Assembly (NCBI GenBank): GCA_976226885.1
Contig: OZ320315.1
Coordinates: forward strand, 97,216,001 to 97,280,000
Source of the DNA: Iphione sp. A-MEVVRFRX5
Taxonomy: Eukaryota
DNA: 64,000 nucleotides
Direction: 5' to 3'
Shown here piece after piece: positions 1 through 64,000 of the stretch. A program made the translations under genes and the position numbers. A model generated the notes under the pieces. That model did not search any database, had not been told where the DNA came from, and worked only from the letters and a program-made list of their open reading frames with translations. Each line of letters opens with the position of its first letter. Within the stretch, counting starts at the first letter, position 1.

Positions 1-484
1 AAATATGTTCTGTCAGAATATCAGTCACATTTTTAAGCATAATTTGCAGGTCCGACCTCGTTTCATAAAACATAACCTGGACTGAGTCAGTAGGTTGGGA
101 TTGCTCTATTAGTCGTTGGAGAGTCTGGAGAACTGACCTTTGTCTGGAATTAGTTCTGAATAACTGCCATCAGCAGTATTATTAGAAATCCCAGTAAGAG
201 ACTCTTTACTTTTTTGTATCGATATTGAGATCAACAGGGCTTACCTCTTTTCTTTTGATGCCACCGTCATTCGGGACTATATTTCCCTTCCCTTCAGGGG
301 TAATCGGTGTGACAGCAGTTGGCTCTAATGGGATAGGGTCTGTTGAGCAGGCATTCTTTTCTTCTTTTGCCATTGATTGAAGCGGGGTTAAAAATAATGG
401 TGTTGCAAGCACTGCGTCCACATAGCCTGCGGCCGAGTGCGTTGAAGCGTCGTGTGGTTGGGTATTGTTTTCCGCGGTGTCCAT
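1..484 (-). pseudogene. N-terminal part of a LINE ORF1; the element continues off the left edge of the window
   Basis: ORF 206..484 shares AAGYVDAVLA and KRKEVSP with the ORF1 start at 7106..7681 (AALAYADEVLA, KRKDISP). After a frameshift it reads VQVMFYETRSDLQIMLKNVTDILTEHI, resembling the start of the coiled coil. Confidence 0.6.
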
Positions 485-619
485 GTCTCTTGGGTACGAG
501 ACAATCCAGCGGTAGTTTTTAAATCCAAGTTTCCGCGTTAAATGTCTTAAATGTCGCCCTGATGATTATATTGGCGAGCGGTCTAGTGTAGTTGAGGGGA
601 ATTAGTGCCACCAGTCACT

Positions 620-960
620 CCCCCAGTCCGCAAAACACGTCCGTTCACCTCCACGCCATCATGTGTCTCTCTAGCTGCCATCACTGCCTCACGAGGGAAG
701 ATGGACCTGTCCACCCTGTGTGTATCAGATGACGGGGTGCCGACAGTGATGCCGAAATCCTCACCAAGGAAGAAATCTCCCAGTTGCCAGTCACCCGACC
801 AGGTTATGCTCTAGGCTTGCATGCTGGCGTCTATCTTCACACTGTCTGAGATGGGGTCCTGAGGTCTTATGATCTTGGCTGCTTTGTTGAAAGTAGCTGC
901 AAACTGAGTCCACCAGTTTGTCCTCATGGAATTCTCTGCCCAACCTCACTCGGTCAGATT
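620..960 (-). mobile_element. DIRS-order retrotransposon RNase H fragment
   Basis: Manual minus-strand translation gives ...DSVKIDASMQA*SITWSGDWQ..., matching the DAS..GWGA RNase H motif of the other DIRS pieces (e.g. EADASLKGWGATDG at 28.3 kb). Confidence 0.5.
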
Positions 961-964
961 TGCT

Positions 965-1932: not shown

Positions 1933-4632
1933 TTAAATATATACAATATATACAATGTATGTACAATGTATTCTTAATCCAAATTCCAATGAAACGTTGA
2001 TTTTGTCATCACAATTCATGATACTTTCCAGTTTTCTTTCATCAATAATTGTTAAACATGTGGTTTTTGACAAGCAGTCTTTGATTTTAATGGAATCTGG
2101 TAGGTTGTTCCATAATCTTGTTGCCACATATTTGGGTTCATTCATGAAATTTGATTTCTTGGGGAGTGGGAGTGGAAGATCAGTGCGTCTAAGTATGCTT
2201 TTGGTCAGTCGATCTTTGTACTGGGTGATTAGGACTGGATGAAATATGCTCAGTGTGAAATATTGACTTCTTAGTTCTAATGGCAGGATGTTATGTTTTT
2301 TACCTGTTGCAATTCTGACTGCCTTTTCGAGTTGTTTCTCTAACTTTTGGAAATCCAGAGATCTATGACAATGTATTGTTCCAATTCCATATTCTATTGC
2401 TGGGATGAAATAGGTTTTAAGTACTTGGATAGCGGTTTCTTTGTCTATACGTGAAGATTGTCTTATGTTAATAAGTGAGTATGATCTTTTGATATTTGTA
2501 TTGTGATACATGTTTAATTTCGACATTGTCGACTGTTATGCATAATTTCGAGTTTACGAGAATATTTACTCCTGTTACATGTGAATAGCATGCTCTCAGT
2601 TTTCGTTAGGTTCATTTTGATTCCATTTGCAGAACACCATCTGTTGAGTTCATTTAGATCCCAGTTCAGGCATTCTTCAATTACAGCAATGTGTTGGTCA
2701 GAGAAAAGTCAGATCGTATCATCCGCATACATGATGCAATGGGAATATTCTAAGCATTTTACACTGTCGTTTATAAATAGGGAAAACAAGAGCGGGCCTA
2801 AAATGCTTCCTTGGGGTACGCCAGTTTTTAGTGGTAAGGAAGCAGACTTTGTATCAGAAATTTTTGTGATAATCGAACGATGTTGTAGGTAAGATGAAAA
2901 CCAACTTAGTACATTCTTAAAACCCATTTTGTTCATTTTCTCAAGTAAGATTTGGTGATCGATACTATCAAATGCTTTTTGATAGTCTACAAATATAGCC
3001 CCTGTTGGTCGACCTTCATTCATATTGGTGTGGATGTAATGAAGTACATCATTAAGGGCATGTGTGGTAGACTTTCTCTTACGAAAACCATATTGATTGT
3101 CACAGAAGAGATTGTGACGTTCTATGAATGGTATACACTGATCTGCTACAATTCTTTCTAATATTTTTGCACCTATAGGAAGGATACTTATTGGTCTGTA
3201 AGACTTTCCATCTGATCTGCTGCCTTTACCTTTATATAAAGGGTGATGGTAGCTATTTTCCAGCGTAGCGGAAATATGCATACTGAAGGCTACAATTTAG
3301 GAGGTGCGTGAATTCTTTACATATGCTAATAAGACAGGATTTTATTATTTTTGATGATTTGATATTCATACCTGTGGGTTTTGATTCCCTTTGGTCTAGA
3401 ATCACTTTTTTTACTTTCTGCGGGTCAATTTTATCAAATTCAAAATGGTCCACTGCCTCCTCTACATAAGTGGTGATTAGTGGACTATTTCTGTTACATG
3501 GACATTGACCTACGGTAGAGAAGTGTTGATTGAATTTATTAGCCGATTCATATAAGGTGAGGAATTGCTTACCTTCTTTTAGTATTGGAGTGGAAGTTTC
3601 CTTGTTCAGTCCGAGACAACGTTTAAGAGTTGACCAATAACGTTTTGGACAATTTTTGTTCATATTAATTGATTTTCTCATGTATTCCTTACGATCAAGT
3701 AACTGATCGGCTTTACAATTCTCTTTCATGATTCTAGCCTGCTGCCACAATTGTGGGGATTTCGACCGGATGGCAAGTTTGAAAAGATTGTTTTTTTCTT
3801 TGATTAAGTTTAGGGTATTTTTGGAGCTCCAACTTTGATTACTATGTAGTGATTTACTTATTTTTTCCGGACTAATAGAATAAAAGGTTTTTTCAATGAA
3901 GCGATCTAATCTGGTTGCCAAATAATTCGGTTTGGAGGCAGTATTTATATCCAATTTGACCGATAGTGATATGGCATAATGGTCGCTTATGTACATTTCG
4001 TGTACTCTGGCATTACACTCATCGTTGTAGTTGGTTATGATGTGGTCAATACATGAGCTACTATTGATAGTACATCTGGTAGGGCCAGTGATTTTCGGTG
4101 TTAAGTTAAAATTGTTACATAGGTGAGTCAATTTCCTATAGTTTGCATTTGACTGATCCATGGAGTCAATGTTAATATCGCCTATTAATATTGTAGTTGC
4201 TTGACCAGGCCATAACTTCACTAAGGTGGCATCAAGATTATTGAGAAAAGATGTTATATTCCCTTTCAGTGGACGGTATAAACATTTACCATTGCGAGAG
4301 TTGATTTTAAGACATGCTAATTCAATAAAACATTCACTGTCGATCAGGATCAGGCTTTTGTAATATACTCAAATACCACCACCTGCACTGTACGATCTGT
4401 CTAACCGGAAAATATTATAATTGTCTATATGCAGCAAACTGTTAGGAATGTCATCATTTAGCCAGGATTTGGTTAATACTAGTACATCTGGGTTGAATGT
4501 AGACAACAGTCTGAAACAGTCTAGGGTTTTGTTGCGTATACTACAAATACTCAAATGCATAATGAACAGTTTTCCTTCTTCCGCTGTTAAGGTACTAGCC
4601 ATATTTGTGATAAGTGAGCCAAATACTTTCAA
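1933..4632 (-). pseudogene. LINE ORF2 (APE endonuclease + reverse transcriptase), frameshifted
   Basis: APE motifs: SICSIRNK, DVLVLTKSWL, IGDINID, SCIDHI, SDHYAI. RT motifs: YRPISILP, QYGFRKRKST, DYQKAFD, GVPQGSILGPLLF, YADD. Confidence 0.92.
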
Positions 4633-5140
4633 GAGACATCATTATAATAACGAGCGTCTGACATATACTTGGAATCAGGTATTGATAATAACACATATCT
4701 CTCACATGGACGTGAATTATGGCGCTGTGATGTGAAAGGCCATAGGAGCTGATAAATTTGTATAGTAATAATATACATCATGAGACGGGATCGTGAAAAT
4801 AACAACACAAAAGTGTTATGATTTTATTAGAGACCATGCCACTGTCGGAACTCAAGAGGAGTTCAATCTGCAGAGGAGTTCAATCTGCACCTACGTCGGT
4901 CTCAGAGAGGAGGCCAGGATGAGTATAATTCTGCATGGTCTTTGATAGCTGTCTCAGTAGAGGAGACAAATAAAGATCACATGTTCATATGGTCGGTGTG
5001 CATAGGTGAGAGTATATATAGGCCTATTTCTTTGCGTGAACATGCCTTACAGACAATCGGCTAAGGCAAAAATAGTTTACTCGCCGGGAAACAGTTCAGT
5101 TCATTCGGCTTATCAAAGTTCGTCAGTCTTTGAGGACTAG

Positions 5141-5833
5141 TTATATTTTCAGCTTGTGTATCAGGCTCACCATAGCTCGTACAAGTTCCAGTCTGCCAGC
5201 AGGACCAAGATGACACCCGTCTGCTAGCTTGTGAAGGCGGTTGGTGTCTCTACCATTCGAGCGGCTGTGTAGAATTACGCCGTTGTACGGGGTAGGTACC
5301 CCATGTTGCCCATTGAAGGAAATCATCTGCCTGTTGATTAAGTGCGCAGCCCGGTTCACGATTTTCTGCTTCGGATGGCTGGGAACACCTGAAAAATCTT
5401 CCCTTTGATTTTTAGTATTGAAAACTGCTAAATCTGGAGCCATTACTTGCGAAAAAATCACATACGAGCCTGGCAGACAAGTAGAAATGGTATCGAATGC
5501 ACTGAGCACCGATAGCATAAATTCTTCACATAAAGTGTAAGGGTCAGTGTGTGGGACCGACAATTGTTTACATACGTGTCCATTAGGTAGCTTATAGGTT
5601 CGAACCAAAGTCGTAAGGTCGTTTGAGCCACCTAGGATAATAATGTAAAATGGAATATCAGTAAATTGAAACTCACAAATTTCTCATACCAATTTGTGTA
5701 AGCCTGCTCCAGGATATACATGTAGGATGCAGCTCAAACCATTTTGTCTCAATTCTCAGTGTAGTCTCCTGCCGTGTGAGTCAGTGAAGATATGCACGGG
5801 CAGAGGAACAACGTCGGAATCTATTTCCAACAT
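5141..5833 (-). pseudogene. SGNH/GDSL-type hydrolase (esterase) ORF with in-frame stops
   Basis: The ATG at 5833 lies 4 nt after the ORF1 stop. Block I IFTDSHGRRL, block II VYPGAGL, block III ILGGSNDL, block V LADGCHL. Confidence 0.82.
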
Positions 5834-5837
5834 TATC

Positions 5838-7681
5838 TTACTCAGTCGGAGAATCTGTTGTTTGTAATGTCGATCTAACCTTCTCTAAAATCAATCCCAG
5901 CCAGTTACCCCCAGTAGTCATCGGTTTTGATAAGTCAAGGTTACGAAGAGTCACGCCTACCCCCCAACTATTGTCCAATGAGGCTTTGTAGATTTTTCTG
6001 TTGCCTGTCGAAAGGAGGGACGTCTTGCTTGAGTGACACTGACTATATTTGGATACCAGTATGCTCGTCATTCTCTTGCTTTTGAGCGTCAGTCATTTTA
6101 GTGGGGTCGGTTAGTGCTTTTGTTTTTCTGGGGATTAGTGTTGGGTCATCGATCAGCATGATCTCCTCGGCCAGGTCAGTGCATCCAAAAGCAAGCGCTT
6201 TGACTGATTGAAAAGCCTGTTCGGCTGAGGTATACTTGATGCCATTGTGTGTGAAATTGTCCTTGCACATGTTTGATAGTGGGTGGTTTTTACCAAAGAA
6301 AGCAATGCTATTGTCATTACGTTTCTCCGATGCCTTTTCAAGCGAGAACCCGGGTGGTAATCGGTGGAGTGTTCATGGTGTGTATGTTGTACCTGATATA
6401 GTGAGTTTGTTGCCTTTCAATTTAGTGTCAAATTTCAAGGCTTTAGCTTATTGAAATACGCTCCGCAATTCACCCCTACTTACTCGGTCTGCTTGTGGGA
6501 GATCCTCATTTATCCAGACCCCCCCCTCAGGGTCTTCAGGTTTGCTCTCCCAATTAATATTCTGGAGCGAGTGTTTTGTTTTATGAATTTAACTTTTATG
6601 TCCCTGACTCCGTTGCTGTTTTTTGTACCGATTCGGAAACATGGGTCCATGTTACCTGCTGCAAATAAGGGGTCTGCCAGAGTGAAGACTTCGCTCACCC
6701 GTGTCCATAACCATTGTGGAGTTTCCCCTCCTTCTTCTGAGAGACCCGAGATTATTAAATTCATCATTTTGCTATCCCGCTCAAGCTTGTCCACCATCCC
6801 TCTCATTGATTTAATCTCATTGCACATTTGGGTCTGCTTCAGTTTTCCACACCCACCAGTAATGGGATTGTCATCGAGTTTCGCCCGTAATTCTGCATTT
6901 TCTGCTTCAAGCTCCTCTAACCTGTCGCTTTGGGACTTTACTGCTACGTCTAATTCCACTACTTTAACTTGGTTTGCCTCTATACTTGATCTCATGTCTT
7001 CACTAACCTCTTTCATGTCTTTGACGTGAGCATTTAAGATTTCCTGAAAGCCCAGTAGGGAAGCGCTCAATTCATTTTTGATTTCATTTAGCATTCCATG
7101 TACCATTAACGAGGGGTATGTTCATTTGGACTAGAGCATTTGATTTCATTTAACATACTCAGGACATCCTCTCGCATGTTTTGGCTGACTGTGTTGTCTA
7201 GAATTGTTGGTGACCTATCTCTTGCCTTTTTCTCTTCCTGGCTATCCAAAATCGGACTGATATCTTTCCTTTTGAAACTGCACACTGGGGTCCCCAAAGT
7301 AGATACCTCAGTTTGCGTGTAAATTTCACGGCTTCCACAACGAGTTTTTATTGATAATTCCTCATTATGTTCTGTAGTCTCTTTTTCCTCTGATAACTTA
7401 GTTTCTGTGGTACCCTTTTGTGTTTCTGATTTGTTTGTGTTTTTGAGACATTCTGAGCCGGTCGAGTGTTGTGATTGTTCGTTAGATATTGATGTCTTGT
7501 CTGTTGTGTCAGTCAGTAATGCTTTTGGTATTTCTATGGAGTTTTGCTGCTGTGAAATACTACTGTCTGTCCTCTGTGTGTACATCTTGACTGGTTTCGC
7601 TGCAAGCACTTCATCTGCATATGCCAGTGCAGCGTTGACTGAAGTTTCTAAATATAGACTCTCGTCATATGCTAGACTCAC
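5838..7681 (-). pseudogene. LINE ORF1: disordered N-terminus, coiled coil, RRM-CTD and C-terminal NADAR domain, frameshifted
   Basis: Coiled-coil heptads, then MMNLIISGLSEE...FRIG...DIKVKF (RRM). NADAR motifs at about 5860-6330: YTSAEQAFQSVKA, LDNSWGVG, GGNWLGLILEKVRSTL. Confidence 0.85.
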
Positions 7682-9424
7682 TATCGCTCATTCAGTCGTT
7701 GTCGGTCCAGCAAAAGTTAAAGAATTGTATATTAAATCTTTTGAAGAAGTGATCAGTTAAGACAATACAAAAGTCTGATTGATTACCTTTTGAGTTTCCT
7801 TATTTATGTGATCCTGTCTGTCTTCTAACCGATCCAGTCAGCTAATTAGCTCCGTCTGGCCGACACGTCTTACCACGCCAACGCCATGCCTAGGGATTTT
7901 CAATGTGTGATTGATCCCTTCATAGATATCTTTTAGAAGGACACCACAAGCTGTCATTGTACCCTTACCAGGTCTAAAGCAAAATTGATTCTTATGGAAG
8001 ATTTCACATCTTTCTGTAAATCCATTTACTTGTTTGAGACAACAGATTCCAGGATTCTTCCGGTCACCCAGAACTACTCCGTTCCTGAGCGACTTGTTAA
8101 TAAGTCGGGTTTAGAAATTTTTAATTTTTGAACCAACTTATATAACTCAAAGACGGTGATTTCACAAAAAGTGTTGATATTTTCTGCAGGCACCTGAATA
8201 TTTTCCACATTATAACTAGGCCTCACATGACTTCTTAATTCATCCACAGTTTCAACAAAGATATTTATTTCCTCAGATACCTTTTCCCCTGAGTTTTACC
8301 AAGCACCATCTCGTTCAACAGTATCCAAAAAAGGTTTTCATTACCCTCACAGTGGTGCAACCTTTTATGAAAATGGTCTCGTTTACCAACCTTTATCAAA
8401 TTATTAACCTTATTTCGATAGAAATTTGACATTCGTTTATAATCAGTAATTCGTGTCTGACACCATCTTTTATGAAAATATACACGTTCTCTCCTTTAAT
8501 TTTTAAGTATTGGATTAATCCAAAAGATATGGCCTATCCACACTTCTTTTTCCTCAAATGGAGCAATTTCTTTTATTCCCAAAAATTATCAACAGAGGTG
8601 GTTTGGATGTTTGGCCAGTCACAACATTATAACCTTTCTTTTAACTCGAGGTATGAATAATTTTTCATGTTTCTTCGGCTTATTCGGCAAATACTTTCTG
8701 TCGACTTTTCTTAAAATATACAAAAACAAACTTGTGATCACTTATGCCAGTGTCAAAAATACCAAATTTCTGTATGTTTTCTGAATTGGTATAGATATGG
8801 TCCAAACAGGAACCAAAATCATGGGTGGGTTGTGTAATTGTCTGGCAGAGACACTTCTCATAAAGTGCTGACACTTTCTTTTAGGGTGATTATTCCTTTC
8901 CCAATCCACATTGAAATCCCCCATGGTTGTTACCTGATTATTGTGTTTGTTCAATCTTATAACAGTTTCTTCCAAATCGTTTAAAAGACAATCTAACACT
9001 CCAGTCGGGTGACGATACACCACAAATAATAAATGCTGTTTACGTTTTCCTGGCTTAAAATTTACAACTAGCACTTCCCCATTTTGTGACATCAGGCTTC
9101 CCTCAATAATGACCCCCGAGATCCATGAGTCACAAACATACACTACCAATCCTCCTCCCATTTTCTTTTTTGTTAGCTCAGAATCCCTATCTTGCCGATA
9201 ACAGCGATAACCAAGGATTTCTATTACTGATGTTGGAAGGCTGGGTTTTTGCCAGGTTTCTGAGAGACCTTACACATCTACATCATGGTCTTTTAATACT
9301 AACTGTATTTCACTCAATTTGCCCAATAAACTATGACAATTCCATTCTAATAATTTCAAGACTTTCATACTCAGTAGAGGGAATAACAGGTAGCGACTTC
9401 CTAGGTCATAAGAAAACAATGTAC

Positions 9425-10020
9425 TTACAATATCCCAAATGTCAAACCTATGGCAATACTGAAGCTGGTACCCCAGTCTTGCAAAGCTACATCATTAGGG
9501 TGACAACCGTCAATCAGATACTTGAACCGAGAGCAAAATCTGTTCTTCTGCCACCTGTGAACTGGCTCAGCTGTTCCTGGAGTAAACTTTTTTATTGAGA
9601 TCCTTAATCTGATTGTTCATAATCTGAACACAGTTGGTAACATGGTGTTAATTATCTTGAGTCAATGTCCCCGGGCTATAAACATGCCAATCTATACTAC
9701 CAAGAGATGACATTTTCCTTTCAAAAAGAGACAGAAATGCTGATAGCTAATAGCTCCACGTGGAGGTGTCATCAAACCCTGGGGATATCTGTTTAGTTCT
9801 TTTGTCCCTTTGACAAATATCAGTTATTCCAACAAATACCAATATCAAGTGATATTCAGAGCTATCATTGCTCTCCAACCACGACAGAGTATCCTTTAAT
9901 TCGGCCCCCGGCATATACAAAACATCAGCCACAATGTCGTTAGTTTTCAACCACATATGATACAGGTTCTCATAGAGGTGACGACCTCGTTGAGTCTGAT
10001 AGGATTAATACTCGGTACAT
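9425..10020 (-). pseudogene. SGNH/GDSL-type hydrolase ORF, frameshifted
   Basis: MYRVLILSDS.RGRHL, YMPGAEL, VFVGITDI and KYLIDGCHPNDVALQDWG; collinear with the intact 25642..26289 protein. Confidence 0.85.
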
Positions 10021-10599
10021 TATTCAGAGAGTTTTTACCTACAATACTGTATGACACCAAATTAGCAAAATCAACATGGTTACAGGTTTGTGCTTCCGCC
10101 AGCACGAAACTTCAGATAATCCAGGCAGACTATACCTGTTCTCACCCTTTAGCACCGTCAGTGCTTACCGGTATGTGCTTCCGCAAGCACAGATAACCTT
10201 ACAGAGTAGCAATAGATGGTTGGGTTATCATAATCTTCCATAAACCAAAACAGTAAAATATTTCTCGGATTGACTGTACTAACACCAGTACCAATTACAA
10301 TCTGCAATACCTGCAACCTTGTCCTACTATTACAGGTGTAGATCTGGATTCCAACGCAGACTGCATGATCAGAATCTTCTTAGCTGTTCACCTGCGTAGT
10401 CTCTGGCTAATGCGGCTATCTGTAATATGAATAGGGTACATAATCACGTTGAGGATAAGATCACAGACGTGATCCTCTAATGTCAGATAATGTGTTTATC
10501 TTACCAAGCGCAGCTGATTATTTAACAACCTAATGCAAGGAGTATCCGCACGAGGTAACCTGTCGAGCTGCCTCCAACCCAGACAGATTTTGCCTGCAA

Positions 10600-11420
10600 G
10601 AAACAGAAGAATATTACATTATGGTTTAGACAATTCTGCACGAATCTCTTGCATTAGTAGTCAATTTCAGCCTTGGTCAGGTAGAGATTTTTCAACGATT
10701 GGCCAGCCCCAAGGAATTTGTCCCAGCTAGCTAGGATTATAGCTTTACCTACAGTTTTCATTAGAGACTTCCTTGCTGGCATATTATGAGAGAATTTTGC
10801 AAATAAACCCTCTCGCAGCACCCCTTCCATTTTCTTTTCCCAATCCGCAGATGGTGCACACTGGTTACCAAGTTGACGGACCATGAAGGGAGTCCGGGCA
10901 AGATTCGACCTTCAGTTTCCTTTATACAGGTTTGTTCTATACTCAGACTAGACAGTAGGCAGGACGATGTGTCATAAGTGTACTGAATGCCGTCAACTCT
11001 CAGAGTGAGCCCTCGTACAGTAGCTTTTGATCCTTTCTCTCGGGCCAATTCAGCAATCAGGTTCAGATGCCTATTTTTCGCTTGACTCGCCTCTGGTATA
11101 TCTTCCTTCAAAAAGACCCCACGAGTATAACCTGAGAAACGCGCTAAAATTGGCCTGCCACGCTTGGAGGGTTTTCCTATTCGAGTAGCTGAATGAAGAG
11201 AGTCCGAATTGTAGTGGGGATCAATTTTGCTGAAAATTTCATTCACCATGTCCCACGACGTTGTCTCATTTTCCTTCAAATCTTCTATTATCAAATTGTG
11301 TCGTCTTGCATCCAGTTCAAGGCCAAGGTTATATAATCTCCGATTCAAATCGCCCTTATACTTCGCCATACCTTCAAGTTTATCATTTATGGACTTTTTC
11401 CAGGTGTTTTCACCAGACAA
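10600..11420 (-). pseudogene. LINE ORF1 RRM-CTD plus the C-terminal half of NADAR (internal deletion)
   Basis: RRHNLIIEDLKE...ATRIGKP...PILARF and FLKEDIP, then WEKKMEGVLREGLFAKF...WDKFLGAG...LLMQEIRAEL. Confidence 0.8.
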
Positions 11421-11682
11421 AATCTTATCAACTGACTGGAATATTAATACAATAATGTATGAGAATCCAGTTTACCAACACATTTACAGAAGATGATAAC
11501 TACCCTGTATAAGGGTACGGGGTGATGATGATACTTGTAGGCTATGTTTCAGCGATAATAAATATGTCAGTTACACTGTGTGATAGTAGGTGTGATTTTT
11601 CAAAAATAGGACGGTAAGAATGATGCTATTTTTTAGTCAATTTAACTATTTAGTGGGTAATGACCAAGATGTCTAGGAAACG

Positions 11683-14858: not shown

Positions 14859-15153
14859 AATATCAGTCTACCCATACTCTCTTCCTTCCTATTTTGAAGG
14901 AACCTACTAATGGTAGGGTGACACTTTGAACATAGCCATTGATGAAAGGATGAGATGAGGAAAGAAGAAATAACTATCAAGTGGACAAAATCATGTTTGC
15001 TAAATAGCAAATGATAGTCTTTAAATAATGACAACATGACTTGGATACATGCAGGAGGGTGACATTTTAGTTAAAAGGACCCATCACCAACAGGCATATA
15101 TGATCAAGTTAACTCACACAACAAGCCGCAGAAAAAACAAGTGCTGAGTATCC

Positions 15154-18494: not shown

Positions 18495-18544
18495 AAATTC
18501 AAACGAGTGAAGAGCAGTTGAGATACAGCACGTAAACAGTAGAG

Positions 18545-19075: not shown

Positions 19076-19119
19076 TTTAGCATTACTCTTAACAGTCGCC
19101 CTACTGATGGTATGTGGTG

Positions 19120-40001: not shown

Positions 40002-40039
40002 GGAGAGACAAAGGGAACCTCAGATATTGATATATGTGA

Positions 40040-49000: not shown

Positions 49001-49330
49001 AGAGAATCATCTTGTGGTTTTACTACGTCACCAGTAATTTCTTTGCCACTGGCACCGCTTTGTTTTGGCCGCTGTTTATTCACACATTGTTTTGTTTCCT
49101 TTGTTTCCGTTCTCTTCTTTGCCATTATCGTTGTTGATCCAGACATTGGATCCTCTCAGCCTCTTCTTTGAAGCGTTTTATCACTATAGCGGACAAACCT
49201 GACAAAGATACCTCTGACTCCATCTTTGTTCTGCCTGTTTGTACGGTATGCATAATCAATGTCCCCCAACCCCAGCTTGACTCCAATCTTCCTGAAAAAA
49301 GTGATTATGACAGACTTAGCACATGAATCC
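46090..49330 (-). mobile_element. LINE with ORF1-NADAR joined to the ORF2 linker/RT (hydrolase and APE absent) and a (TTCTA)n tail
   Basis: RT 46653..47744: QHGFCKGRGT, DLTAAFD, GVPQGSHLGP, YADD. AATAAA plus (TTCTA)x4 at 46091-46121. Confidence 0.85.
48343..49320 (-). pseudogene. LINE ORF1 remnant: RRM end, long acidic linker, NADAR
   Basis: DIDYAYRTN...IFVRFVRYSDK, then in another frame KKRLRGSNVWINND. NADAR: IRSVMHAYSWEKA, TWEDSMDEVMLSLAREKL, LQSSG, KDEYWSTG. Confidence 0.8.
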
Positions 49331-50575: not shown

Positions 50576-50793
50576 AAGTTTTGCATACCATAAGTTTTCT
50601 TTAGTTTCATTTCCAAATCCATGGTCATGTCTAGATGTCTATCAATAACAAACAAACAATAACAATAACCCAGATATTTGAGCCAGTTAACTTGTTCAAC
50701 GTCATGACCGTTCATACTTAGGTTTTATGTTCATACTTAGAACTTGTACCCCTTATGCAGGCTTCTTACTGTAGAAAATATTAGACTGACTGA

Positions 50794-51720
50794 TTTTTTT
50801 TTTGATTCACTAAAATATCATGAATTTAACACCGTTCATTTAGGATTTGAAGATCTTGTTGTAATCTACGTCCTATAGATACTGGGTCTTTATCTTTAGT
50901 AAAAAGGACAGTTTGGTCCGCATACATTATACATTCTGATTCTTTGTAGTGTTTGATACTGTCATTGATAAATAAATTGAGCATCATTGGACCAAGTATA
51001 CTTCCTTGGGGCATCCCGATCTTCAGTGGCAGTTTTTCAGAAAAGTGACCATTAGCCTTGGTTTTAATACTTCTATGTGATAAATAATGTATTAATTAAA
51101 CATGTAACAAAAATTGGCTTTTCCAAAATAGTTCCCTAGTTAATATCCTATGATTCATTGTGTCGAAAGCTTTACTAAATTTCATAAAAACTGCCCCCAC
51201 CAATTCCCCATTGTTTAAAGCTTGATGTATATATGTCAAGAGATCAGTAACTGCTGTTAATGTATATTTCCCTTTTTGGAACCCATACTGTTTATTAGAT
51301 CAGGTTTTTAAGCCTTATATAGTCATTCATCTGGCTGAACACTATTGATTCCAATTTTTTTTAAGGTCATTGGCAGAATTGAGATGGGTCTGTAATTGGT
51401 TGGCTCATCTTTACGACCCTCGCCTTTGTATATTGGTGTAATCGTGGCCTCTGTCTACGATACTGCAACTACCTGTTTCTCTAAACTGTTATTTATCATG
51501 CCACAGTGAATTGACTTATTGATACTGATGTTTGAAGAGAGGTACATTACATGAAGCCTGGATGAATGAGCCGATCTCAGCTGTGAAAGAAATGGGTAGT
51601 TCAGACATATTTTTTCTAATTGTTACATCATGGTCAAAATCAACCAATCGAATCTTTTAAAATTGAGACATGTCGCAATTTTGTAAAAATGACGTCTGCA
51701 CTACCCGTTTCTTTCACCGC
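50794..51720 (-). mobile_element. LINE RT internal fragment (heavily decayed)
   Basis: PQGSILGP and IMYADQ; upstream remnants of RPISILP, YGF and KAFD; T10 run at 50794-50803. Confidence 0.8.
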
Positions 51721-51980: not shown

Positions 51981-53970
51981 ATTCAGTTTAATTCAATTAT
52001 TTTATTGAGTGTGCTTTCGAACATGCACTCAAGAAGAAAATGATCATAACGTGTACTGCCATACAATCATAACACGTTCAAACACATCCAAATACTCTTA
52101 CTAATATGATCTCCATGTGCTATACCTCTCCAACATCTGCCTTCAAGCCACCACGGTCTTTAATCCACAACCTCCGACCTTAGGCGACTATCAGGTTCTG
52201 ACTTAACCTTCGTTTAACCTCACACTTAAACGCTTTTTTAGGTAATCTCCTGGTACACAAAGGTAGCTTATTCCACATCTGTAGCCCTATGTACTGGAAG
52301 CTCTTGATGTATTTCTCACACCTAGGATGCTTGATTACCAGTTCTTCATTCCTTGACGCCCTAGTTCCTCGGGCATGATTTTTTTCTGAAACAGTTCAAA
52401 TGATACATAGATTAAAAGGAGTCCAAAGTACTGCATTTTTCCATCAGTACTCATCATTCCTTTACTACCCATCCAGTCCACCACCATCCTCCTAGCCATT
52501 GTCCAGTTTAAGAAGCATTGTTAGAGTCCACATATGCCCTTTCCAACTTCCTCAGTAGTACTAATGTCACCCCTAGCGAAATTTCCAAGCCACGATCTAA
52601 CATTGACAAAACAAAAGCACCCCTTTAAGCCTAGACATCAAGTAACTTTTACTCCTTATAATTTTAATTTTTTGTTCAAACATGCATCGAAAGCTCAACT
52701 TATCATCAATCCAGTAGCCCAAATAGTTAAATGTGTGAACCTTCTCAATTGCTACCCCATCCAATCTCAAGTCTAAATTGTGTTAAGTACCATGCCATTT
52801 TTCTTACACCAGACAGATATTGGTCTTAGAGTATATTGCATTTTTAGATGTAGTGCCCAGGCACTACATCCCCAGGTGTACACGGTGATGTCATCTGCAT
52901 ATACTACTAGCCTTGTTGGAATAGGCAGACTACTCACATCATTTATAAACATGGAGAATTACCAGGGCCCGAATATGGAGCCTTGGGGTACTCCCATGTT
53001 CACTGTCCTGTACTCTGATGAGTTTCCATTTTGTGATCTGTTTTCCAGATAGTTGGAAAACCATACCTGTACCACTCCTTTAAACCCACAATTTTCCAAT
53101 TTCCTTAATATCAGACTGTGAGATACTAGATCAAAGGCTTTGCTCAGGTCAAGGTACACTGTGGCCGAATAACGAGATTTGTTGATGTCGTTTAATGCCT
53201 CCTGAAAGAGACTGGCACACGCTTGAGCACAAATTCCGCCTTTTCTGAAACCGAACTGACTTTCCATCACCAAAGCTTTATTTTCCACAAAGCCAGACAC
53301 CTGGTCAATAATGAACTGTTCCATAATTTTGCCAGGTACGGGTAACAGTGATACAGGCCAGTCATTCTGCATCTCAATTTTGCACACTTCCACTCATTAA
53401 CATATACTCCAGTAGATAGACACTTGTTAACCATCCAAGAGAACACATGCAGCTTTATTTGCAACAAATGTGATTCTCTGCCCTAACTGTTTTGCTAGTC
53501 TGCTTACCGAGGGTTGCTGACAAAGATTCCCATTTGATTTTACAGTCTCTATACTTTTCTTCCCTTCATCCCCAAATATTTCCATCCTTAATGTCTGCCA
53601 TAGCTTCCTCGAGTCTCCTACTGATGCACTTGACCTCTCACTTACCCTCTCACGTCTTAGTTTGATCCCCTGATTCGATCGCTCTCTATAGTATCTATAC
53701 AATCTTGCATCGTCCAGCAACCCATAACGACGATACTTTGTTAAAAAATAAGCCCTCTCTTTTTTCAGTTCTAACAAGGCAGGAGTGTACCACGAAGGTT
53801 TTTTGATCCTATGGTCTATCTCTACAACTAGGGCTATTGTATCCAACGCATGCAGTCCATTGTCAATTAATACTTTCCAAACCTTATCCACCGTCAAGTC
53901 CTCCCCTATGTCTGAGTCCAAATTCGATAGTGCATTTTCATCATTATGACAAACTTACCAACACGTGTAT
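51981..53970 (-). mobile_element. 5'-truncated LINE (linker, RT, 3' tail)
   Basis: PVSLLPVPGKI, QFGFRKGG, DLSKAFD, GVPQGSIFGP, YADD; AATAAA plus a degenerate TTGAA tail at 51981-52006. Confidence 0.85.
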
Positions 53971-53990: not shown

Positions 53991-56500
53991 TCAATAAACA
54001 TAATACCGATAAAAGAGATACGAGTTGATAACAGTAAATTGCAGGCGGTCATGTATAGTTTTTAAAACAATGTATAGCCATGGTGTGATTTCGTTCTTGA
54101 GGTATACATGGACGGCTGCTGATGTCCAATCCCCCCGCGCCATGATCTGTTGTACTGTCAGGCCACCTGCCACAGCATGTTGGGCCCCTTCCCTATGCAA
54201 ACCATGTATGTTATATTCATGATAAGCCCAGGGAAGCCAGGGCCCCGGCCCATACTGAGCGGGCCCAGGTGATCGGGATCGGCCGGCCAGTACGTGGAAA
54301 GACCAGCAGTGGAGCTAGGGGGGGGGGCCCACAGGAGGTTTTCATCTGATCCCAAAGCTGGCATAGGTTTATAGGCCCAACCTGGATGGGGACTACCAGG
54401 GGGCAAGGACGCCCAAGAGCCTGACGGGTTTTAGACCATTTAACCATTATTCTGAGGCTACCAGGTTGGAAATCCAAATCTCAAATCAGCCAGTACGTAG
54501 AAAGACAAGCAGTGGAGCTAGGGGGGGAACCCACAGGAGGCTTTCATCTGATCCCAAAGCTGGCATAGGTTTATAGGCCCAACCTGGATGGGGACTACCA
54601 GGGGGCAAGGACGCCCAAGGGCCTGACGGGTTTTAGACCATTTAACCATTATTCTGAGGCTACCAGGTTGGAAATCCAAATCTCAAACCTGGAGATGCCT
54701 GAGCGGGTCAAATTGGGTTATCGACGGGGGAAATAAATTAGACTGCCGCAAGAGGGTTTGGAAGAGGAGACCAAAACCAAATTTCAAGGCTGGGCCTGCC
54801 TCTCCAATAATGGCGTGGAGGATCCTGATCAGTAATACGAGTGTGACCAGGAGTGAGGGCCTAGCCGGGGGATGAGGGCCCCTGCGGATCCAACGTAGGG
54901 CATTAGCTAGCAGGCGGGATTCCCAATGGACAACGGATCTCCCCAAGTCCAGGAAATGTGACTTGACAGCACTGATCATGTTCGCCACAGTAGATGGAGC
55001 ATGATCGCGAATACAGTACTCAATAAATGCGCAGAGATGTTCTGGGGTAGGGGGCTTAAAATCAATCAAGAATTTAGAGGAGAAGGTAATATATCTTCTG
55101 ACAGCTGTAAGTCAATTCTTAATGGTTCCCAGCCTAGATGCACTCATCTGTCTGGCCTCAGCAGCAGCCAGTAGGGAGCTATACACTGGATCTGTTCAAA
55201 GATAAGAAGAGTACTCTTGGGCCAAGAGTAATGGAGAGATTCGTCATAGGTTAAGAACAGAGACAAGGGACGCCGCGATATCGACAGCGGACTGGGAAAT
55301 ATGAACACGACTAAAGGCATCCGCTAACTGCATGTTTTCCCCTGGGCAATGGCGGACCGAGATAATTGATTGGTGTTTATGGGCTAGCATCCAGAGACCT
55401 CGGGCGCATGCATTTAAGACCCTGTCCCTACCTCTACCACCATCAAGAAGAGCCACGAGCTCTTACAAGGCAGGAGTCTGCGACGATGATGTACTGAGGC
55501 GGAGGAGGGGCAAGAATGGTCTTGAAGTTGAGAGATGAGCCACGCCAGATCGGCCTTGACCGATGGCGAAACAAAGACAGTGCCTTGTTCGGCCTGTCTG
55601 ATGGCCTCCAGTAGCCTAGCCATGTACAGACGAGCTGGACGAAGAATTTTTGCTAAGTGGTTGACCCGCCCCACTAGGCTCTGCGCCTGTTTAAGCGGCA
55701 TTACATCAGCCTGGAGGGCAGTCCTAAATGAGTGTACATAAGAGTGTACCTTAGAGACAGGGATAGACACCTCCATAGACCAAGAGTCAAAGAATATGCC
55801 CTGCCACGTGGCGACTCGAAATGGAGGCTGCAATTTAGATACAGTGACAGTGAGACCCAGGCTCTGGAGTAGGTCTTGTACATGTTAGAATTTTATACAC
55901 GCACGGGGCGAACAATAAATGCGGCAATCTTTTGCATATACATAGCACTCAACCTAGCCCCGAAGGCAAGCACTTTGTCGAAGTAGTATAGGCCATCAAC
56001 CACTATTCCCAAGAGAGTCCAGTCTAATGGGCAAACGCCGAAGTGCCTATAAGCTCTTTTTAAATCGACAACAGCAATATATGAGGCAGGGGAATGCAGT
56101 AGTGCAGAAATCAAATGTTCAACAGTTGGTAACACGTGAGGATAATATATACAGTGGACGACATTTTTCTGAATATACATGTTCATATTTTGATCTGCAG
56201 GAAAGGACGATAACAGGTTTTGTGCCGTCAGCCTTATCGCGAGTCATCAGGGGGGCTATCACTGTCCATGGGTGGAAAGGAGGGGCTGTGAGTGGCCCCT
56301 CAAGCGCACCGTCCGCCAGTTCAGTTTGTATATATTGCCTCAGTGCCTGAGGATGGCGGGTGGCTGAGGGATGATTATCTGACACTGCTCACTTGCTCAC
56401 TTGCAGAAGGGAGACGACCGGCGCGTGGCGAGCTTACATACCAGTCCAGGGACACGGTTGGTTGCATAATGACCTTGCGTGACTCCAATCGCCACGCGGA
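53991..56500 (-). mobile_element. DIRS-order element: RT, RNase H and tyrosine recombinase, degraded
   Basis: NHPSATRHP, PLMTRDK, DLKRAYRHFGVCPLDWTLLG, LAFGARLS, WQGIFFDSWSMEVSIP, KADLAWL, HCPGENMQLADAFSR. YR: LLRQSNL, WSKT, HGLHREGA...GDWTSAAVHVYL. Confidence 0.92.
54286..54687. repeat. ~200-bp tandem duplication inside the YR gene
   Basis: 54286-54485 and 54489-54687 are near-identical. Confidence 0.92.
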
Positions 56501-56509: not shown

Positions 56510-57960
56510 AAATGAGTAACCCCCATAGTCACGTCCTATACCATATGCTCGATCTAGTTTTTGTTCACCCTTCTTTACCACAAAGTAGACTGGAAGATGG
56601 TCACTTGAAGAATTTGTTTATGGTTAGTGTAAATGTGATCCAGACAGAGTCAGGTTATGTTGTCTCATTATGTCTAGACATTCAGTTTTTCCTACTGATC
56701 CCTTTAACCAGTCCACGTTCATGTCTCCCAGTAAGAGTTACAACTTGGTTGTGATATTTGGCTACATATTTGTGCTAAACTACCTCAAACCTTGCCAGAT
56801 AGCTGGTTAGGTTTCCCCCAGGACTTCTATACAGGGCTGTAATATACTGCCGCTTTCTTTTCCTGGCTTCACTCGAAGATAGAGAATGTGACCGTCAATA
56901 TCTTCTGATGTGTAGTCCTCCAGTAGTCTGACTCGACAGGTCACTTCAAACCATACCCAGGCATATTTCTGGACTTCATACTTATTGACGCATCATTACC
57001 AACACTGCTGAAATTAATCAGTTTGTGATGTTACTTCATGTTGTACTTCCTCCATTACCTTTCCCGCTAGGTTGTACCCCGACCTAGTTCCGTCCTGTAG
57101 TTTCCTATCCCACAAAGAATATTCAGTGCCATAAATGTAGTCCTGACTGGCCTCAATCAGTAAGGTGTTGTCCGTACCAAGCAACTACCACTTGTAGTCA
57201 GCACTGCTTTTAGCTTCGCACGAACTCCTTCCTTCAGAATTTCCTCTTGCATTGATTTCCAGTCGTGCAATTTTGTTATTTGGTAAGTTAACCCCCTTTG
57301 CCCTCCTGCCGCTCGATTCCGACTGAATCTCTTCTCTGATGTCGTCCCGTCCATGCAGCCGAGCACACTCTGCAGCGATCCACTGATCTACAGAGTTGTA
57401 GGTGTCCCCTCCCAGCAAGAAGCAAACCGGAGTCTCATTGGATAGAACGCAGTGTGGACCACTAAAAATAGTCGCCTTTCCCACCTGTCATTTTGCCGTG
57501 TCCGCAAGAGAGTCCAGACGATTGAGCCCCCACCAGGTATCAAGTTCGACCTCATTAAAAACACTCCGTTTCTCACATCTTCACCAATAAGCTTTACTAA
57601 TATTGGCCTTGAACCCTTTTTCGCCGTGCCTACTCTAGTTGCTCCCAACAGAGCGTCACTGTAGTAAAACTCATGATTGATCCGTGATAGAGGATCATTC
57701 ACCCTCTCCCAGGTGTCCTCATATTGATGCTACGACTTCGAATATCCAGATTCAGTATCGACCTGTTATACTTGCTGCGTGTTGGTCTGAACGTTGCCGG
57801 TCGTTGTACGCTCTTTCTTGGCTCTCTCTTCCTGAAACATGACAGATCTCTAATATGAGTTTTGAGGTCAGTGAGCTCAGCGAGCTCAGACATGGTCCTC
57901 TCCAGTCTATCCGCGACTTAGGCCTCAGGTTCTTGTTAGGAGCAGGTGTGCCGGTCAATT
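56510..57960 (-). mobile_element. LINE remnant: ORF1 (coiled coil, RRM, NADAR) joined to an internal APE fragment
   Basis: LGATRVG...RPILVKL. NADAR: FSGPHCVLSN, YNSVDQWIAAECA, G.NLAGKVMEEVQHEV near 57040. APE: VKPGKRK...YRSPGGNL, LLGDMNVDW, CLDHIYTN at 56510-56960. Confidence 0.8.
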
Positions 57961-58963: not shown

Positions 58964-59230
58964 TCATAATGACGTCGCACTCATGCGTGACCAATTGAAG
59001 TGGCAGCGATCTTCGAGTAACTGATGACGATTTGTATCCTGCCCATTCGCTCTGCAATGAATGATGTTGCCGATGTGGGAGATGAGTCGCCCATGCGACC
59101 TGTTGAACACTCTCACCTCGTTGTTGATGCCGTGCATCGTTTTGTTCAGAGCCCTCTGGATTTCATTTGTGGTTTTCTGGGACAAAGTCTCCATGCAAGT
59201 GACTTGTTATATATATATTTTGTCTGGGCA
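58964..59230 (-). pseudogene. Orphan C-terminal fragment of an SGNH hydrolase
   Basis: IIHCRANGQDTNRHQLLEDRCHF matches ILHSRSNGRDTNRLHKLADGCHL of the 5.1-kb hydrolase. Confidence 0.75.
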
Positions 59231-59377
59231 AAAGAACTCAGAGAAGACAATAAACGTGTTTGGTAAGTGCCTAACAATGTGATTGTAAGTCTCTACCAGC
59301 AGTGACATTCTGAACGAGAAATTGTCTATATGTTCATTAGGAAGTGTGTGTCTTTGAGAATGGCTTGACGGTTTAAT

Positions 59378-59800
59378 CTCAATTCAATTCAGTTCAAAAC
59401 TGTTTGAGAAACACGTAAAATACAAAACTATGTGGGTTTTCAATGGATACTCAGCCATGAAAACAGAGCAAATTTTACTGTGGCTGACTTTTACTACAAT
59501 ACCTCCTTTTTAGGTAACTCTTTATTTCTTGTCTCGACTTATTACTAAGGAATACAGGTAAACTATTCCATTGCTGTTGAATCTGATAAATGAAGCTTTT
59601 CCTATAAAATCACTAATCAGTTTTGCAATTTTCAGTTGGAATTCCAAGCTGCTTCTCGTCTTTGTAGGGTTTCTTATATCACACAGCGACAGATGATAAC
59701 TACAACATATGGTTTTCAATAGTTGATAAACCCCTAACAATTAACCATTTCTCGACATCATGTATCCTCGTCTATTTTGTTAAAACACATCTCTTAATAG
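59378..59800 (-). mobile_element. Short LINE 3'-end fragment with a (TTGAA)n-like tail
   Basis: Decayed ORF2 C-terminus (59522..59740), then CTCAAACAGTTTTGAACTGAATTGAATTGA, resembling the tail at 965-997. Confidence 0.55.
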
Positions 59801-59822
59801 CATTATTCCAGACTCTATGGAG

Positions 59823-62800
59823 TCAAATCAAATCAAATCAAATAAACTTTATTCACTTCTCAAGAGATAAGGTATGAGGTGTTAAGGTGAATATTAGTAA
59901 TGTTGATGTACTTTGATAGATAACGTTTGATTAAGCTAAATTCTTTAATGATATCTGTTCCTTCCTTCTGGACGGCAGTGTCTGAGGTTCCATCTCTTGA
60001 CTCCTACATATAAAAAGCTCCTCTTGGTCTTTGTTAAGCGGGGCTTCTTCAGGCGTATCTGGTATGTGCACCCTCCTCTGGTACGGCCCCTCCGAGTACA
60101 CTGCAATATGTCTTTTCTCTAACCTATGAACAAGTATAACAGATCTTAATTCTGACAGCTCCTCTAAGGGATATAGTGATAGTTTTTCCTTTAGATTCTT
60201 AGGACTCACACTTCTCCTTGACCTAGTGGTCAATACGACTCTTTTGATAGCAGTATTGTATTCTATTTGCAAGGATAGCAAGCATTTCCTCGAGGTTACG
60301 CACACGAAGGGCAAGCCGTACAAGAATAATGAATGTATAAATCCCATAAATGCTGTGACCCTTGCCCTGAATGGGAGTGTCTGACACAGCCTAGCCAACA
60401 CCTTACTGCGGCCTCTCACCTTATTTCTGATAATCTTTATTTGAGCTAACCAGCTTAACATTGGATCTAAAGAGTACCCAAGTAGGTTGGGATATTTCTC
60501 ATGCTTCAATCGACACCCCTCAAGGTACAAGTCTAGATCAAACGTTGCACTGTGACCAAAACATGTGTAAGTTGTTTTTGCCTGGTTTATTTTTAGGCCA
60601 TTCTTCTTGGACCATTCATCCACCTTTCACACCCCATACTGTAATTTTAATCTTAAGCTCATAATGTTGCTTGCTGAAGCGGACAGTGTTACATCATCTG
60701 CGTAAATTACTGCTTGAGTGACCTTCAAGTCACTTTCTATGTCATTTATCATCAGCACAAAGAGGAGGGGGCCGAGAATGCTCCCCTGTGGCACCCCCTG
60801 CTTGACTAGTCTGTAGTCTGAGTAGCAATTGTTGCAAAAGACCCGCTGCTTCCTATTTTCAAGATACGATTTTATCATTTCGATCCTGTCCACACCTAAA
60901 CCAATTGCATGTAATTTATTTAAGAGTGTTGTGTGATTCAAGACATCAAAGGCCTTGGAAAAATCTATCATTACTATTCCGTGGTGTAGTCCACTATCAA
61001 GGGAGTCATAGACTTTGATTAAGAGTGATGCCACAGCAGTCTCCATCCCCCTCCCCTTGCAAAACCCATGCTGGGACTTAGTCAATATCCCCTTGGTTGT
61101 TAATATTGGTTGTCATGTTTGCTAATAGATAATAAGAAGCTTATTCCATGGTCAAGGTAAGGCAAGACAAAAGCAACAAATTTGCAACGCTTTTTACATA
61201 TCTAAATATATTGTACCCACATATTTCCCTAGATTAATTTGTTTAAAATCTGTAATCCACATGCTATGGTTGTTCCCCTTCCCGTACGAAACCCAAATTG
61301 ATATTGATTGAATAGATTATTTGCCTCTAAATATGAATAAATTTGAGAGGACACAACATGTTCCAGGATTTCACTGGGGGCCGGTTAAATCGAAATTGGA
61401 CAATAGTTTTCGGGTTTAGACCTACTAGATTTTTTATGTAGAGGCACTATAATCGCCTCTTTCCAAGCCAACGGGACGACACTGTCCACGAGTGACCGGT
61501 TTATCAGCTCTGTAAAATAATACAATGTACATTTCAGACTGTCCTACATATATTTCATTGAGATATTTGTGATGCCGGATGGTTTCCCCTGCTTTAACTT
61601 ATTTATATGTTTTGCAACTTCATCGAAACTTGTTTCATCAAAGTACTCTAACCTATTCAGACCGAACATCTCATCAGTAAATCTAGGGTTTAAACCCGTG
61701 CTCAAGGTATCAACAGAGGTCTTAAAGTGTTCGGCCACTACGGGACCTTCCAGCAGAGATCCATCCAACATCAGTCTTATTTCACTTTTCCCCAAATGCA
61801 GCTTCATTAATGAGACCACCACATCTGTTTATTGTCCCCTTGTGATTTCTCAAAACTTTCAGCAAGATAAGTCGTCCTCCCCTCTTTCAGTGATTTGTTA
61901 CATATATTTCTGTAATCTTCAATTCCAGTTAGAACCCATCATTTCCTATTGTAGTCCCGCTCCCCACGAAATTGTAATATTCTATTTTGGTATTTAGGTG
62001 ATATATAACCACAAAATTCCCTCTTTTTAAAGGGACATTTTATCCAAAACTAAATTTACATTATGTACCCAAACTTTCTAGATATCATCTATTGTGACTG
62101 ACTCCTTTATTTCCCAATCACAGTTATTTAGAGCTTCTTTCAAGGTCAGAAAATTATATTGACGGTCATCCCTCACCCATTGCTCGGAGATAGTGTTTCC
62201 GTTTAATTTTCTTAAAGTCAACATAAGTAAGGTATAGTGATCACTGTTACCTTGTACCAATACTCCTGATCTACAAAATCTGTGGTCGATGTGTAGAAGT
62301 GATCCAGACAACCTAAACCAGCATGGGTACTATCACATATAATTTGTTTTAAACCTAAATCACAAGCCATCTCAACATAACATTTTATGATTCTTGTTAA
62401 GGAATTTAACTGACTTCATCAAAAACGATAACATTGCTCACGAATTTCCAGTGGGTGGTCTATAGATTACAAAAATCAAATGAAACTTACGATTCCCCAT
62501 TTTTACCTTAACACAAAGGATCTCCCCATCTGGATCCATCATGCACCCTTCTGGTAGTATTCGAGTCCACTTATAAAGCCACTCCACCCGCTCTCCTCTT
62601 GCCTACTCTCTCTCTTACCCGAGCATATCTAAAACAGGTATATCCATTTATCGATATCATATTGTCAAGGAAAACAGGTGTTAGCCAGGTTTCAGAGAGC
62701 AAAAATATCAATCATATTTAATTTCAGTAGATACTCAATTTCTGACATTTTCCCCAACATACTTCTGCAGTTCCAAGCTGCTATGCGTAAGTGAGTCATT

Positions 62801-64000
62801 TTAAAGCGGCCACTTCGAATATGATACGAGTTAAAAAAAGAAGTAGAAGAAGTATATAGATAGAGGATTATGGTCGATAGGCTAATAAATGGTGGTAGGT
62901 GTCATCATAATTTAATTAAATCAATTTGTAACATTAGCTATGCTCCTAGGCAGCAATTCTGGTACTGTCGTCGTGGCTAGATCTTAGAGAAATTAACGCA
63001 AACTGAACATGAGTGCAATGGCATTACATATACTGTACCCCCAGTCCTGCACAGCCAAGTCACCGGGGTGACAGCCATCATAGAGTAGAGCGAATTTTGA
63101 ACGGTAGCGTGTCTTATCCCATCTGTGTATCGGTAGGGCTGTAGCTGGAGTAAATACATCATTGTTAGCATTTAATTGTCGAAACACATCATAAAAACAA
63201 TATTATTCAAAACAGATTGAAAAGTCCTTGTCGCAGTTAGTGGGCTGTAGACAGCAAGATCTATACTAACAATTGGTAGATATCCTACACGGGCACCTAT
63301 ACCCCACCTCCTGAATCTTGCACACAACTCTTGATCAAATGCAGTTACCCATAGTGCCCAAGTCTTTGTCATCCTGAAGTAGTGATAGTTTCTTACTATG
63401 CCTATCACAATGGCATAGGTTGTTAATACTTAACATTATTAAAATAAGGTTATACTTGCGACAATCATTCTCAGCAGCCCAGTCAAACACGTAGTCCAGT
63501 CTGGCACCAGGACGATGCATAAACCATTGAGTGTCTATATAGTTCAACAGGTGCCTACCGCGAGAGTCACACAATATCAGAACTGAATACAATTATGCCA
63601 GATAACAACAACGTGGTTTACAAAATTGAAAATTAAGAGGTTAGTGTAGAGAAATTTAGAAAAAGGCACAATATCAGAGAGATACAACACAGTACTTTCA
63701 GTGATATGGCTGTGAGTAATGGGCAGCCAGGCAGGCAATTGTCCAGTATAAGTTGTTGACTTGTAGTTGCCTGATGTATCCGACTTCCACACACGTGCCA
63801 GTTCAGTCAGTCAGAGTGACCAGGTCAAGGTTGACAGTCTAGAAAAGACCTAATTATAATTAGCACTATCATTGAACCTTGGGCAGACACTTGCCACCAT
63901 AGGTCAAGGTATGTAACAACAAATCATAATATCTAAGCCCGATGGGGTAGACACTTACCATAAGCGAGCACTACAGTGTTATCCTATCAGTAATGGTAGA
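59823..64000 (-). mobile_element. LINE with hydrolase ORF, APE-RT and a (TTTGA)n tail; ORF1 expected beyond the right edge
   Basis: ORF2 62799 to 59931: MTHLRIAAWNCRSMLGK, SDHY, QHGFCKGRG, DFSKAFD, GVPQGSILGP, YADD. AATAAA plus (TTTGA)x4 at 59823-59854. The spacer motif is shared with the 26.6-kb spacer. Confidence 0.88.
62993..63592 (-). pseudogene. SGNH hydrolase ORF, frameshifted
   Basis: VLILCDSRGRHLL, MLSINNL and LYDGCHPGDLAVQDWGYSI; close paralogue of 25642..26289. Confidence 0.88.

Follow-up and report, generated by a model that had tools for sequence, protein, structure and literature searches.

Introduction

Uni-strand PIWI-interacting RNA (piRNA) clusters, in which transposons are trapped in antisense, have been documented mainly in flies and mosquitoes. 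The Drosophila flamenco and flamenco-like (flam-like) clusters span hundreds of kb and are dense in transposable elements (TEs), whose nested fragments belong to many lineages and lie in nearly one orientation (PMC10643416). The flam-like clusters, 227-1085 kb in length, were found by searching 100-kb windows for TE enrichment and strand bias, and small RNAs then confirmed them (PMC10643416). In Aedes mosquitoes, unidirectional piRNA clusters hold co-oriented antisense fragments of mobile or viral origin, and read-through downstream of a gene is given as one proposed origin (PMC7161354; bioRxiv 10.1101/2022.08.22.504762). Here we describe a locus to be compared with them in Iphione sp. A-MEVVRFRX5, which is probably a marine annelid. 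It is a 64-kb window in which all detected remnants of long interspersed nuclear elements (LINEs) and DIRS-like elements are read on the minus strand, and it lies within a block of the same bias at least 264 kb long.

Co-orientation of retroelements is also familiar from other settings. Zepp of Chlorella and HeT-A/TART of Drosophila telomeres form co-oriented LINE arrays, in which one or a few families insert either at the ends of chromosomes or at the tail of another copy. In the introns of long genes, retroelements show an antisense bias, their orientation being filtered against the host transcript. The block described below shares co-oriented LINEs with Zepp and HeT-A/TART; it is unlike them in its dozens of lineages, in insertions that fall inside open reading frames (ORFs) and in the presence of other element classes. 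It is also unlike the intronic bias, as it is about 99% one-stranded over at least 264 kb and contains no recognisable exons.

Results

Orientation of transposon remnants

The window is the whole stretch of 64 kb that was analysed (G000:C4:97216001-97280000). It is located at 97.2 Mb on a contig of 118.4 Mb and contains no runs of N; the genome assembly comprises 1.18 Gb in 89 contigs. With 100 kb of flanking DNA on each side, the analysed span amounts to 264 kb, and the extent of the block is therefore given as a lower bound. Detection profiles were made from the ORFs of the region itself and mapped over the window and its flanks. As a strand-neutral check, ORFs from all six frames were compared all against all at the protein level, with no seed chosen by strand.

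In the window, TE-protein homology detected with these region-derived profiles lies entirely on the minus strand (32,955 bp, against 0 bp for plus). The profile maps resolved 15-16 LINE chains and about 9 DIRS-like pieces, all of them on the minus strand. The loci bearing a reverse transcriptase (RT) domain are divided in the same way, with 12 on the minus strand and 0 on the plus (two-sided P = 4.9e-4).

The initial annotation had counted some 15 pieces of LINEs and some 8 of DIRS elements, all minus and none on the plus strand. Both parts of this description hold; its counts were sound, and so was the direction of its chance estimate, the RT loci giving the P value above. Its view that the pieces come from many families is borne out as well: the median identity of the RT domains is 30%, and comparison of the window DNA with itself reveals only local tandem repeats.

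Matches to the Pfam families RVT_1, Exo_endo_phos and NADAR are confined to minus-strand ORFs, and the 10 largest plus-strand ORFs of the window matched no Pfam family. Stop-to-stop ORFs of at least 80 amino acids (aa) add up to 14,900 aa in the minus-strand frames and to 6,605 aa in the plus-strand frames. No non-coding RNA was detected in the window with Rfam or in a tRNA scan.

The LINEs usually follow one layout, with an ORF1 that carries a NADAR domain (ORF1-NADAR), an esterase-like ORF and an ORF2 that encodes endonuclease and RT; some consist of ORF2 only. The elements, by position in the window, are as follows.

1167-1804, minus: older LINE, 3′ part, ORF2 from profile position 571; same element as 7898-11444
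2077-6809, minus: younger LINE, near full-length, nested in the same direction in the older LINE; AATAAA and A-rich tail near 1810-1850
7898-11444, minus: older LINE, 5′ part, with ORF1-NADAR, esterase-like ORF and ORF2 to profile position 568; split by LINE 2077-6809
12115-15354, minus: LINE with the C-terminus of the esterase-like ORF and a complete ORF2 (endonuclease and RT)
16670-19076, minus: DIRS-like, two retroviral-type RT-like pieces and one unnamed ORF family
19704-21131, minus: LINE ORF2, 5′-truncated (RT to C-terminus); 8-bp microsatellite tail at 19123-19149
21118-22274, minus: DIRS-like tyrosine-recombinase pieces and an associated unnamed ORF family
23079-28369, minus: three-ORF LINE, full-length, with a 528-aa ORF1-NADAR, esterase-like ORF and ORF2
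32186-34641, minus: LINE, complete ORF2 only; 74% identity over 2.2 kb with a minus-strand copy ~120 kb upstream
36002-41026, minus: three-ORF LINE, near full-length, with ORF1-NADAR, esterase-like ORF and ORF2 with endonuclease and RT
45757-46032, minus: LINE esterase-like fragment (profile map)
46392-49371, minus: LINE, internally deleted, with ORF1-NADAR, esterase-like stub and ORF2 with RT
50569-51451, minus: LINE ORF2/RT fragment, profile positions 486-766
52225-53912, minus: LINE ORF2 with RT, 5′-truncated, profile positions 255-914
54692-56084, minus: DIRS-like, with a retroviral-type RT-like piece at 55905-56084 and a tyrosine-recombinase piece at 54692-55108
57035-57726, minus: LINE ORF1-NADAR, fragment (profile map)
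58994-59353, minus: LINE esterase-like ORF, fragment (profile map)
59987-64000, minus: LINE with the C-terminus of ORF1-NADAR, esterase-like ORF and ORF2 (gap between profile positions 122 and 459); its 5′ part continues past the window end to ~64592

In the three-ORF LINEs (23079-28369, 36002-41026 and 2077-6809), ORF1 ends in NADAR and the separate esterase-like ORF has no Pfam match. With at least 4,416 first-look NADAR candidates genome-wide, the three-ORF NADAR LINE is a major LINE type here. The element at 36002-41026 has short relatives elsewhere in the genome at 91-97% identity; for that at 2077-6809, no relative above 73% identity was found elsewhere in the genome.

Tandem arrays lie 5′ of two of these minus-strand LINEs, at 30129-30518 (LINE 23079-28369) and at 44237-45512 (LINE 36002-41026). 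One array is made of 8 units of 48 bp and the other of 2.9 units of 357 bp, themselves composed of 27-bp subrepeats. By analogy with mouse L1, the arrays may be monomeric repeats of a 5′ untranslated region or promoter.

A check of the flanking DNA, which the initial annotation had proposed, revealed the same orientation bias in both 100-kb flanks, where it runs unbroken through every 10-kb bin. Over the 264 kb, TE-protein homology reaches 120,813 bp on the minus strand and 924 bp on the plus (about 99% one-stranded). Chained RT profile matches place about 44 RT-bearing LINE loci on the minus strand and 1 on the plus (P = 2.6e-12). Direct TE-protein homology covers 46% of the span, which holds 64 LINE chains and about 45 RT loci, and the density of RT is roughly 5-10 times the genome first-look average.

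The strand-neutral protein comparison returned 1702 minus-minus, 30 minus-plus and 87 plus-plus pairs. All 30 mixed pairs trace to a single plus-strand ORF, an RVT_1 fragment ~79.5 kb past the window end, and the 87 plus-plus pairs are antisense echoes of minus-strand ORFs or come from one tandem repeat. A sensitive self-comparison of the DNA gave 193 direct pairs and 1 inverted pair. When the 40 largest unannotated ORFs of each strand of the span were compared with Pfam, those of the plus strand matched no family and those of the minus strand yielded one MULE transposase. The one-strand orientation of the TE remnants is confirmed, and it is stronger than first claimed.

The MULE transposase ORF lies on the minus strand ~99 kb past the window end (L020:9021-9998), and its Pfam match (E = 4.8e-5) is weaker than the curated cut-off.

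At the scale of the chromosome, intact copies with RT and NADAR along contig C4, which carries the window, form 14 strand runs in 29 copies, where 14.1 are expected. These random runs indicate that the genome is not arranged in megabase strand domains.

Element classes and independence of the insertions

Over the 264 kb the orientation is common to four classes of elements, namely LINE, DIRS-like, Crypton-like and the one MULE, which differ in their integration chemistry. At least 12 loci are DIRS-like, several of them with the order unnamed ORF, RT-like piece, tyrosine recombinase, and four are Crypton-like (Phage_integrase and DUF3504).

The tyrosine recombinase family of the DIRS-like elements matches Pfam Phage_integrase at E = 1.5e-5 and has an Atlas score of 0.97 to eukaryotic 'Phage integrase family' clusters. 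A second DIRS-like family is a weak match to retroviral-type RT. Nothing significant was found in Pfam for the small DIRS-like ORFs, and PDB sequence searches with the DIRS-like families came back empty for two of them and with only a weak result for the RT-like one.

The insertions are independent and belong to dozens of diverged lineages. RT identity among the copies is low and many of them still hold ORFs of 500-900 aa, which indicates that divergence took place among active lineages and that each insertion was a separate event. The longest DNA similarity over the span is 2.2 kb at 74% identity, all others being at or below 70%. The LINEs also vary in their 3′ tails, which are formed by different microsatellites or A-rich runs, and in their points of 5′ truncation.

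Nesting is seen in the window and in the left flank. In the window, LINE 2077-6809 interrupts an older LINE at ORF2 profile position 568/571, in the same direction. The left flank holds a LINE inserted in a LINE and a DIRS-like element inserted in a LINE, all co-oriented.

Base composition and other features of the block

The motif AATAAA occurs 129 times on the plus strand of the 264 kb, and its frequency on the minus strand is 1.8-fold higher. On the LINE sense strand, A-runs and TTAAAA show a 2-2.5-fold excess, and at one junction AATAAA and an A-rich tail lie directly against an A-rich target. The observed/expected (o/e) ratio of CpG is uniform across the span at 0.45-0.65, with a mean of 0.56; TpG/CpA stands at 1.2-1.26 and GpC at 0.94, all of these values referring to the block only. 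Such a composition suggests that the whole block may long have been CpG-methylated in the germline.

The only TE-free hole of the span is 9.3 kb long and lies 45-55 kb before the window start. It holds two plus-strand ORFs, L005:7597-8193 (199 aa) and L006:1308-2411 (368 aa), found ~48-52 kb before the window start. Both have a signal peptide, a Cys-rich/leucine-rich repeat (LRR)-like region and a transmembrane segment; neither matched a Pfam family, and a word-based search found no homologue. They may be orphan host genes, opposite in direction to all the transposons.

The sole plus-strand LINE fragment of the span has its nearest relative, 90% identical, at C4:27.1 Mb. Directly upstream of it sits an interspersed repeat of ~125 bp (L018:9400-9524, plus strand), of which the genome holds at least 25 copies on both strands at 78-87% identity. 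The same fragment is abutted by a minus-strand ORF of 546 aa (L018:7916-9553, ~78-79.5 kb past the window end) that is rich in Ser/Arg and Pro and has no Pfam family; the surrounding stretch is GC-rich, and several of its frames contain long ORFs. At L020:1-3100, ~89.7-93.1 kb past the window end, units of ~760 bp are tandemly repeated in at least 4 copies at 84-95% identity.

Discussion

That elements of several classes have been filtered by orientation speaks for selection with respect to a long transcript. The initial annotation had gone further and proposed a candidate flamenco-type uni-strand piRNA cluster. The structural side of that proposal stands, with TE density, near-total co-orientation, nesting, diverse lineages and an extent of at least 264 kb; its transcript and its piRNAs remain a matter of analogy. 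The reading we find best supported, at just short of an even chance and hence put forward tentatively, is a single long transcription unit on the plus strand that would act as a flamenco-type uni-strand piRNA source locus, or 'trap'. Likeness to known clusters is our ground for inferring the RNA, the direction in which it runs and its processing into piRNAs.

In a locus of this kind, the plus-strand RNA of the block would be antisense to every element within it. Elements landing antisense to the precursor would give rise to silencing piRNAs and would be retained. Sense insertions would bring in termination or processing signals, or would yield useless sense RNAs, and would be lost. The window would then be an interior piece of a very large TE-dense block in which only minus-strand insertions were kept.

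What is seen in the block matches the genomic features by which uni-strand clusters are recognised. It is a TE-dense locus on the scale of tens to hundreds of kb; its elements are strongly biased to one orientation (120,813 vs 924 bp of homology, 44:1 RT loci and 193:1 DNA pairs); and many TE families are present as independent, often nested fragments. The Drosophila flam-like clusters were detected de novo by TE enrichment and strand bias, and the present locus shows both (PMC10643416). Unlike flamenco (PMC10643416), it is built of LINE, DIRS-like and Crypton-like elements and not of Gypsy-type endogenous retroviruses, its host is probably an annelid, and it is known from genome sequence alone.

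The block also resembles the unidirectional clusters of Aedes in its co-oriented fragments, and its two plus-strand ORFs recall the read-through origin proposed there (PMC7161354; bioRxiv 10.1101/2022.08.22.504762). It is unlike the same clusters in that no viral fragments were seen in it. As to the machinery, the genome contains five Piwi-domain gene loci, the AGO and PIWI clades taken together. In other annelids piRNAs and PIWI proteins have been reported (PMC8915122, PMC8556966), and polychaete transcriptomes include TE-fragment-rich transcripts longer than 8 kb (PMC8556966).

Several observations weigh against a piRNA source locus. A small-RNA study of Capitella teleta, also an annelid, detected none of its piRNA loci above 20 kb in size (PMC8915122). 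The content of the block is mostly LINE, and not the envelope-bearing long terminal repeat elements typical of flamenco. Over the 264 kb, AATAAA is not depleted on the plus strand relative to a Markov expectation, and composition explains its count. Lastly, the plus-strand direction of the putative transcript is assigned by analogy only.

The main rival is a host transcription unit without piRNA function, that is, a long plus-strand unit with giant introns or a long non-coding RNA, from which purifying selection removes sense elements. We consider it unlikely, and the evidence bearing on it is mixed. Sense LINEs carry AATAAA and A-rich tails, AATAAA has a 1.8-fold higher frequency on the minus strand, and the uniform CpG o/e of 0.56 with its TpG/CpA excess fits a germline-methylated transcribed body. 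The two plus-strand ORFs in the TE-free hole before the window, with their signal peptides, LRR-like regions and transmembrane segments, could be part of such a unit, but no homologue of theirs was detected. Among the 50 largest plus-strand ORFs of the 264 kb none matches a Pfam family, and apart from those two no plus-strand ORF resembling an exon came to light, although short exons would escape such a search.

The strength of the bias also argues against a host unit. For introns, the antisense bias in the animals studied amounts to about 60-80%, against the 99% observed here. It would also be unusual for a functional gene to exceed the average TE density of the genome 5-10 times and to hold repeated nesting.

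A second alternative derives the orientation from insertion, through an endonuclease that prefers A-rich targets on the sense strand of older LINEs, or from replication, through preferential integration on one template in a long domain replicated in one direction. Such a cause is less likely than a piRNA source locus, and quite unlikely in itself. Given the sense-strand excess of A-runs and TTAAAA, an L1-like target preference would favour co-orientation, and at one junction an A-rich tail does abut an A-rich target. However, the A-run asymmetry predicts a co-orientation of 0.66-0.71, at which 44 of 45 loci would have a P of about 1e-6. The DIRS-like, Crypton-like and MULE elements share the orientation too, with about 17 loci to 0. 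We therefore reject A-run preference as a sufficient cause, because 44/45 is too extreme for it and because it leaves recombinase-based elements unaddressed.

Other findings speak against an insertional cause in the same way. The LINE lineages differ in their microsatellite tails and land within ORFs rather than in one another's tails, and intact copies on C4 show random strand runs. The initial annotation had itself named LINEs inserting co-oriented into one another as a rival, and this fails on the DIRS-like, Crypton-like and MULE pieces and on the 44:1 ratio. A site-specific head-to-tail LINE array was rejected on the dozens of lineages, the varied tails, the insertions in ORFs and the non-LINE classes.

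The transcript could also lie on the minus strand, so that the elements would be read in sense, for instance by read-through from LINE promoters, as a sense-strand cluster or a co-transcribed chain of LINEs. The full-length minus-strand LINEs with their long ORFs and tandem-repeat 5′ regions, and the presence of all elements on that strand, agree with this. Yet the minus strand carries more AATAAA as well as each element's own tail, which makes long read-through less likely, and no selective reason is known for keeping DNA transposons in sense. A minus-strand read-through unit is less likely than a piRNA source locus, and we regard it as distinctly improbable.

If a single unit bearing a LINE had long ago been amplified, in tandem or as a segment, the pieces would not be independent. 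This agrees with the repeat pairs being direct, but it is very improbable and was rejected: DNA similarity does not cross element boundaries or reach past single elements (best pair 74% over 2.2 kb), the 30% median RT identity with ORFs of 500-900 aa kept indicates divergence as active lineages and not in place, and 5′ truncation points and tails differ between copies.

Conclusions

In the literature searched, no large piRNA cluster has been described in annelids. The present block, several hundred kb long and 99% one-stranded in the chromosome-scale assembly of a probable annelid, is a concrete and easily testable candidate for one. Should it prove not to produce piRNAs, a new explanation would be needed for so nearly complete a filter on orientation in elements of different classes.

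By analogy with Drosophila, it is possible, at somewhat less than an even chance, that this annelid has several giant flamenco-like uni-strand clusters of 0.3 to more than 0.6 Mb, built of LINE, DIRS-like and Crypton-like elements and not of endogenous retroviruses. The uni-strand 'trap' architecture would then exist in lophotrochozoans as well as in insects, and it would be either ancestral to bilaterians or convergent. If the present block is confirmed as a piRNA source, trap loci could be predicted from the genome in non-model animals with no other data at hand, and such loci would be shown to be able to target LINEs and tyrosine-recombinase elements.

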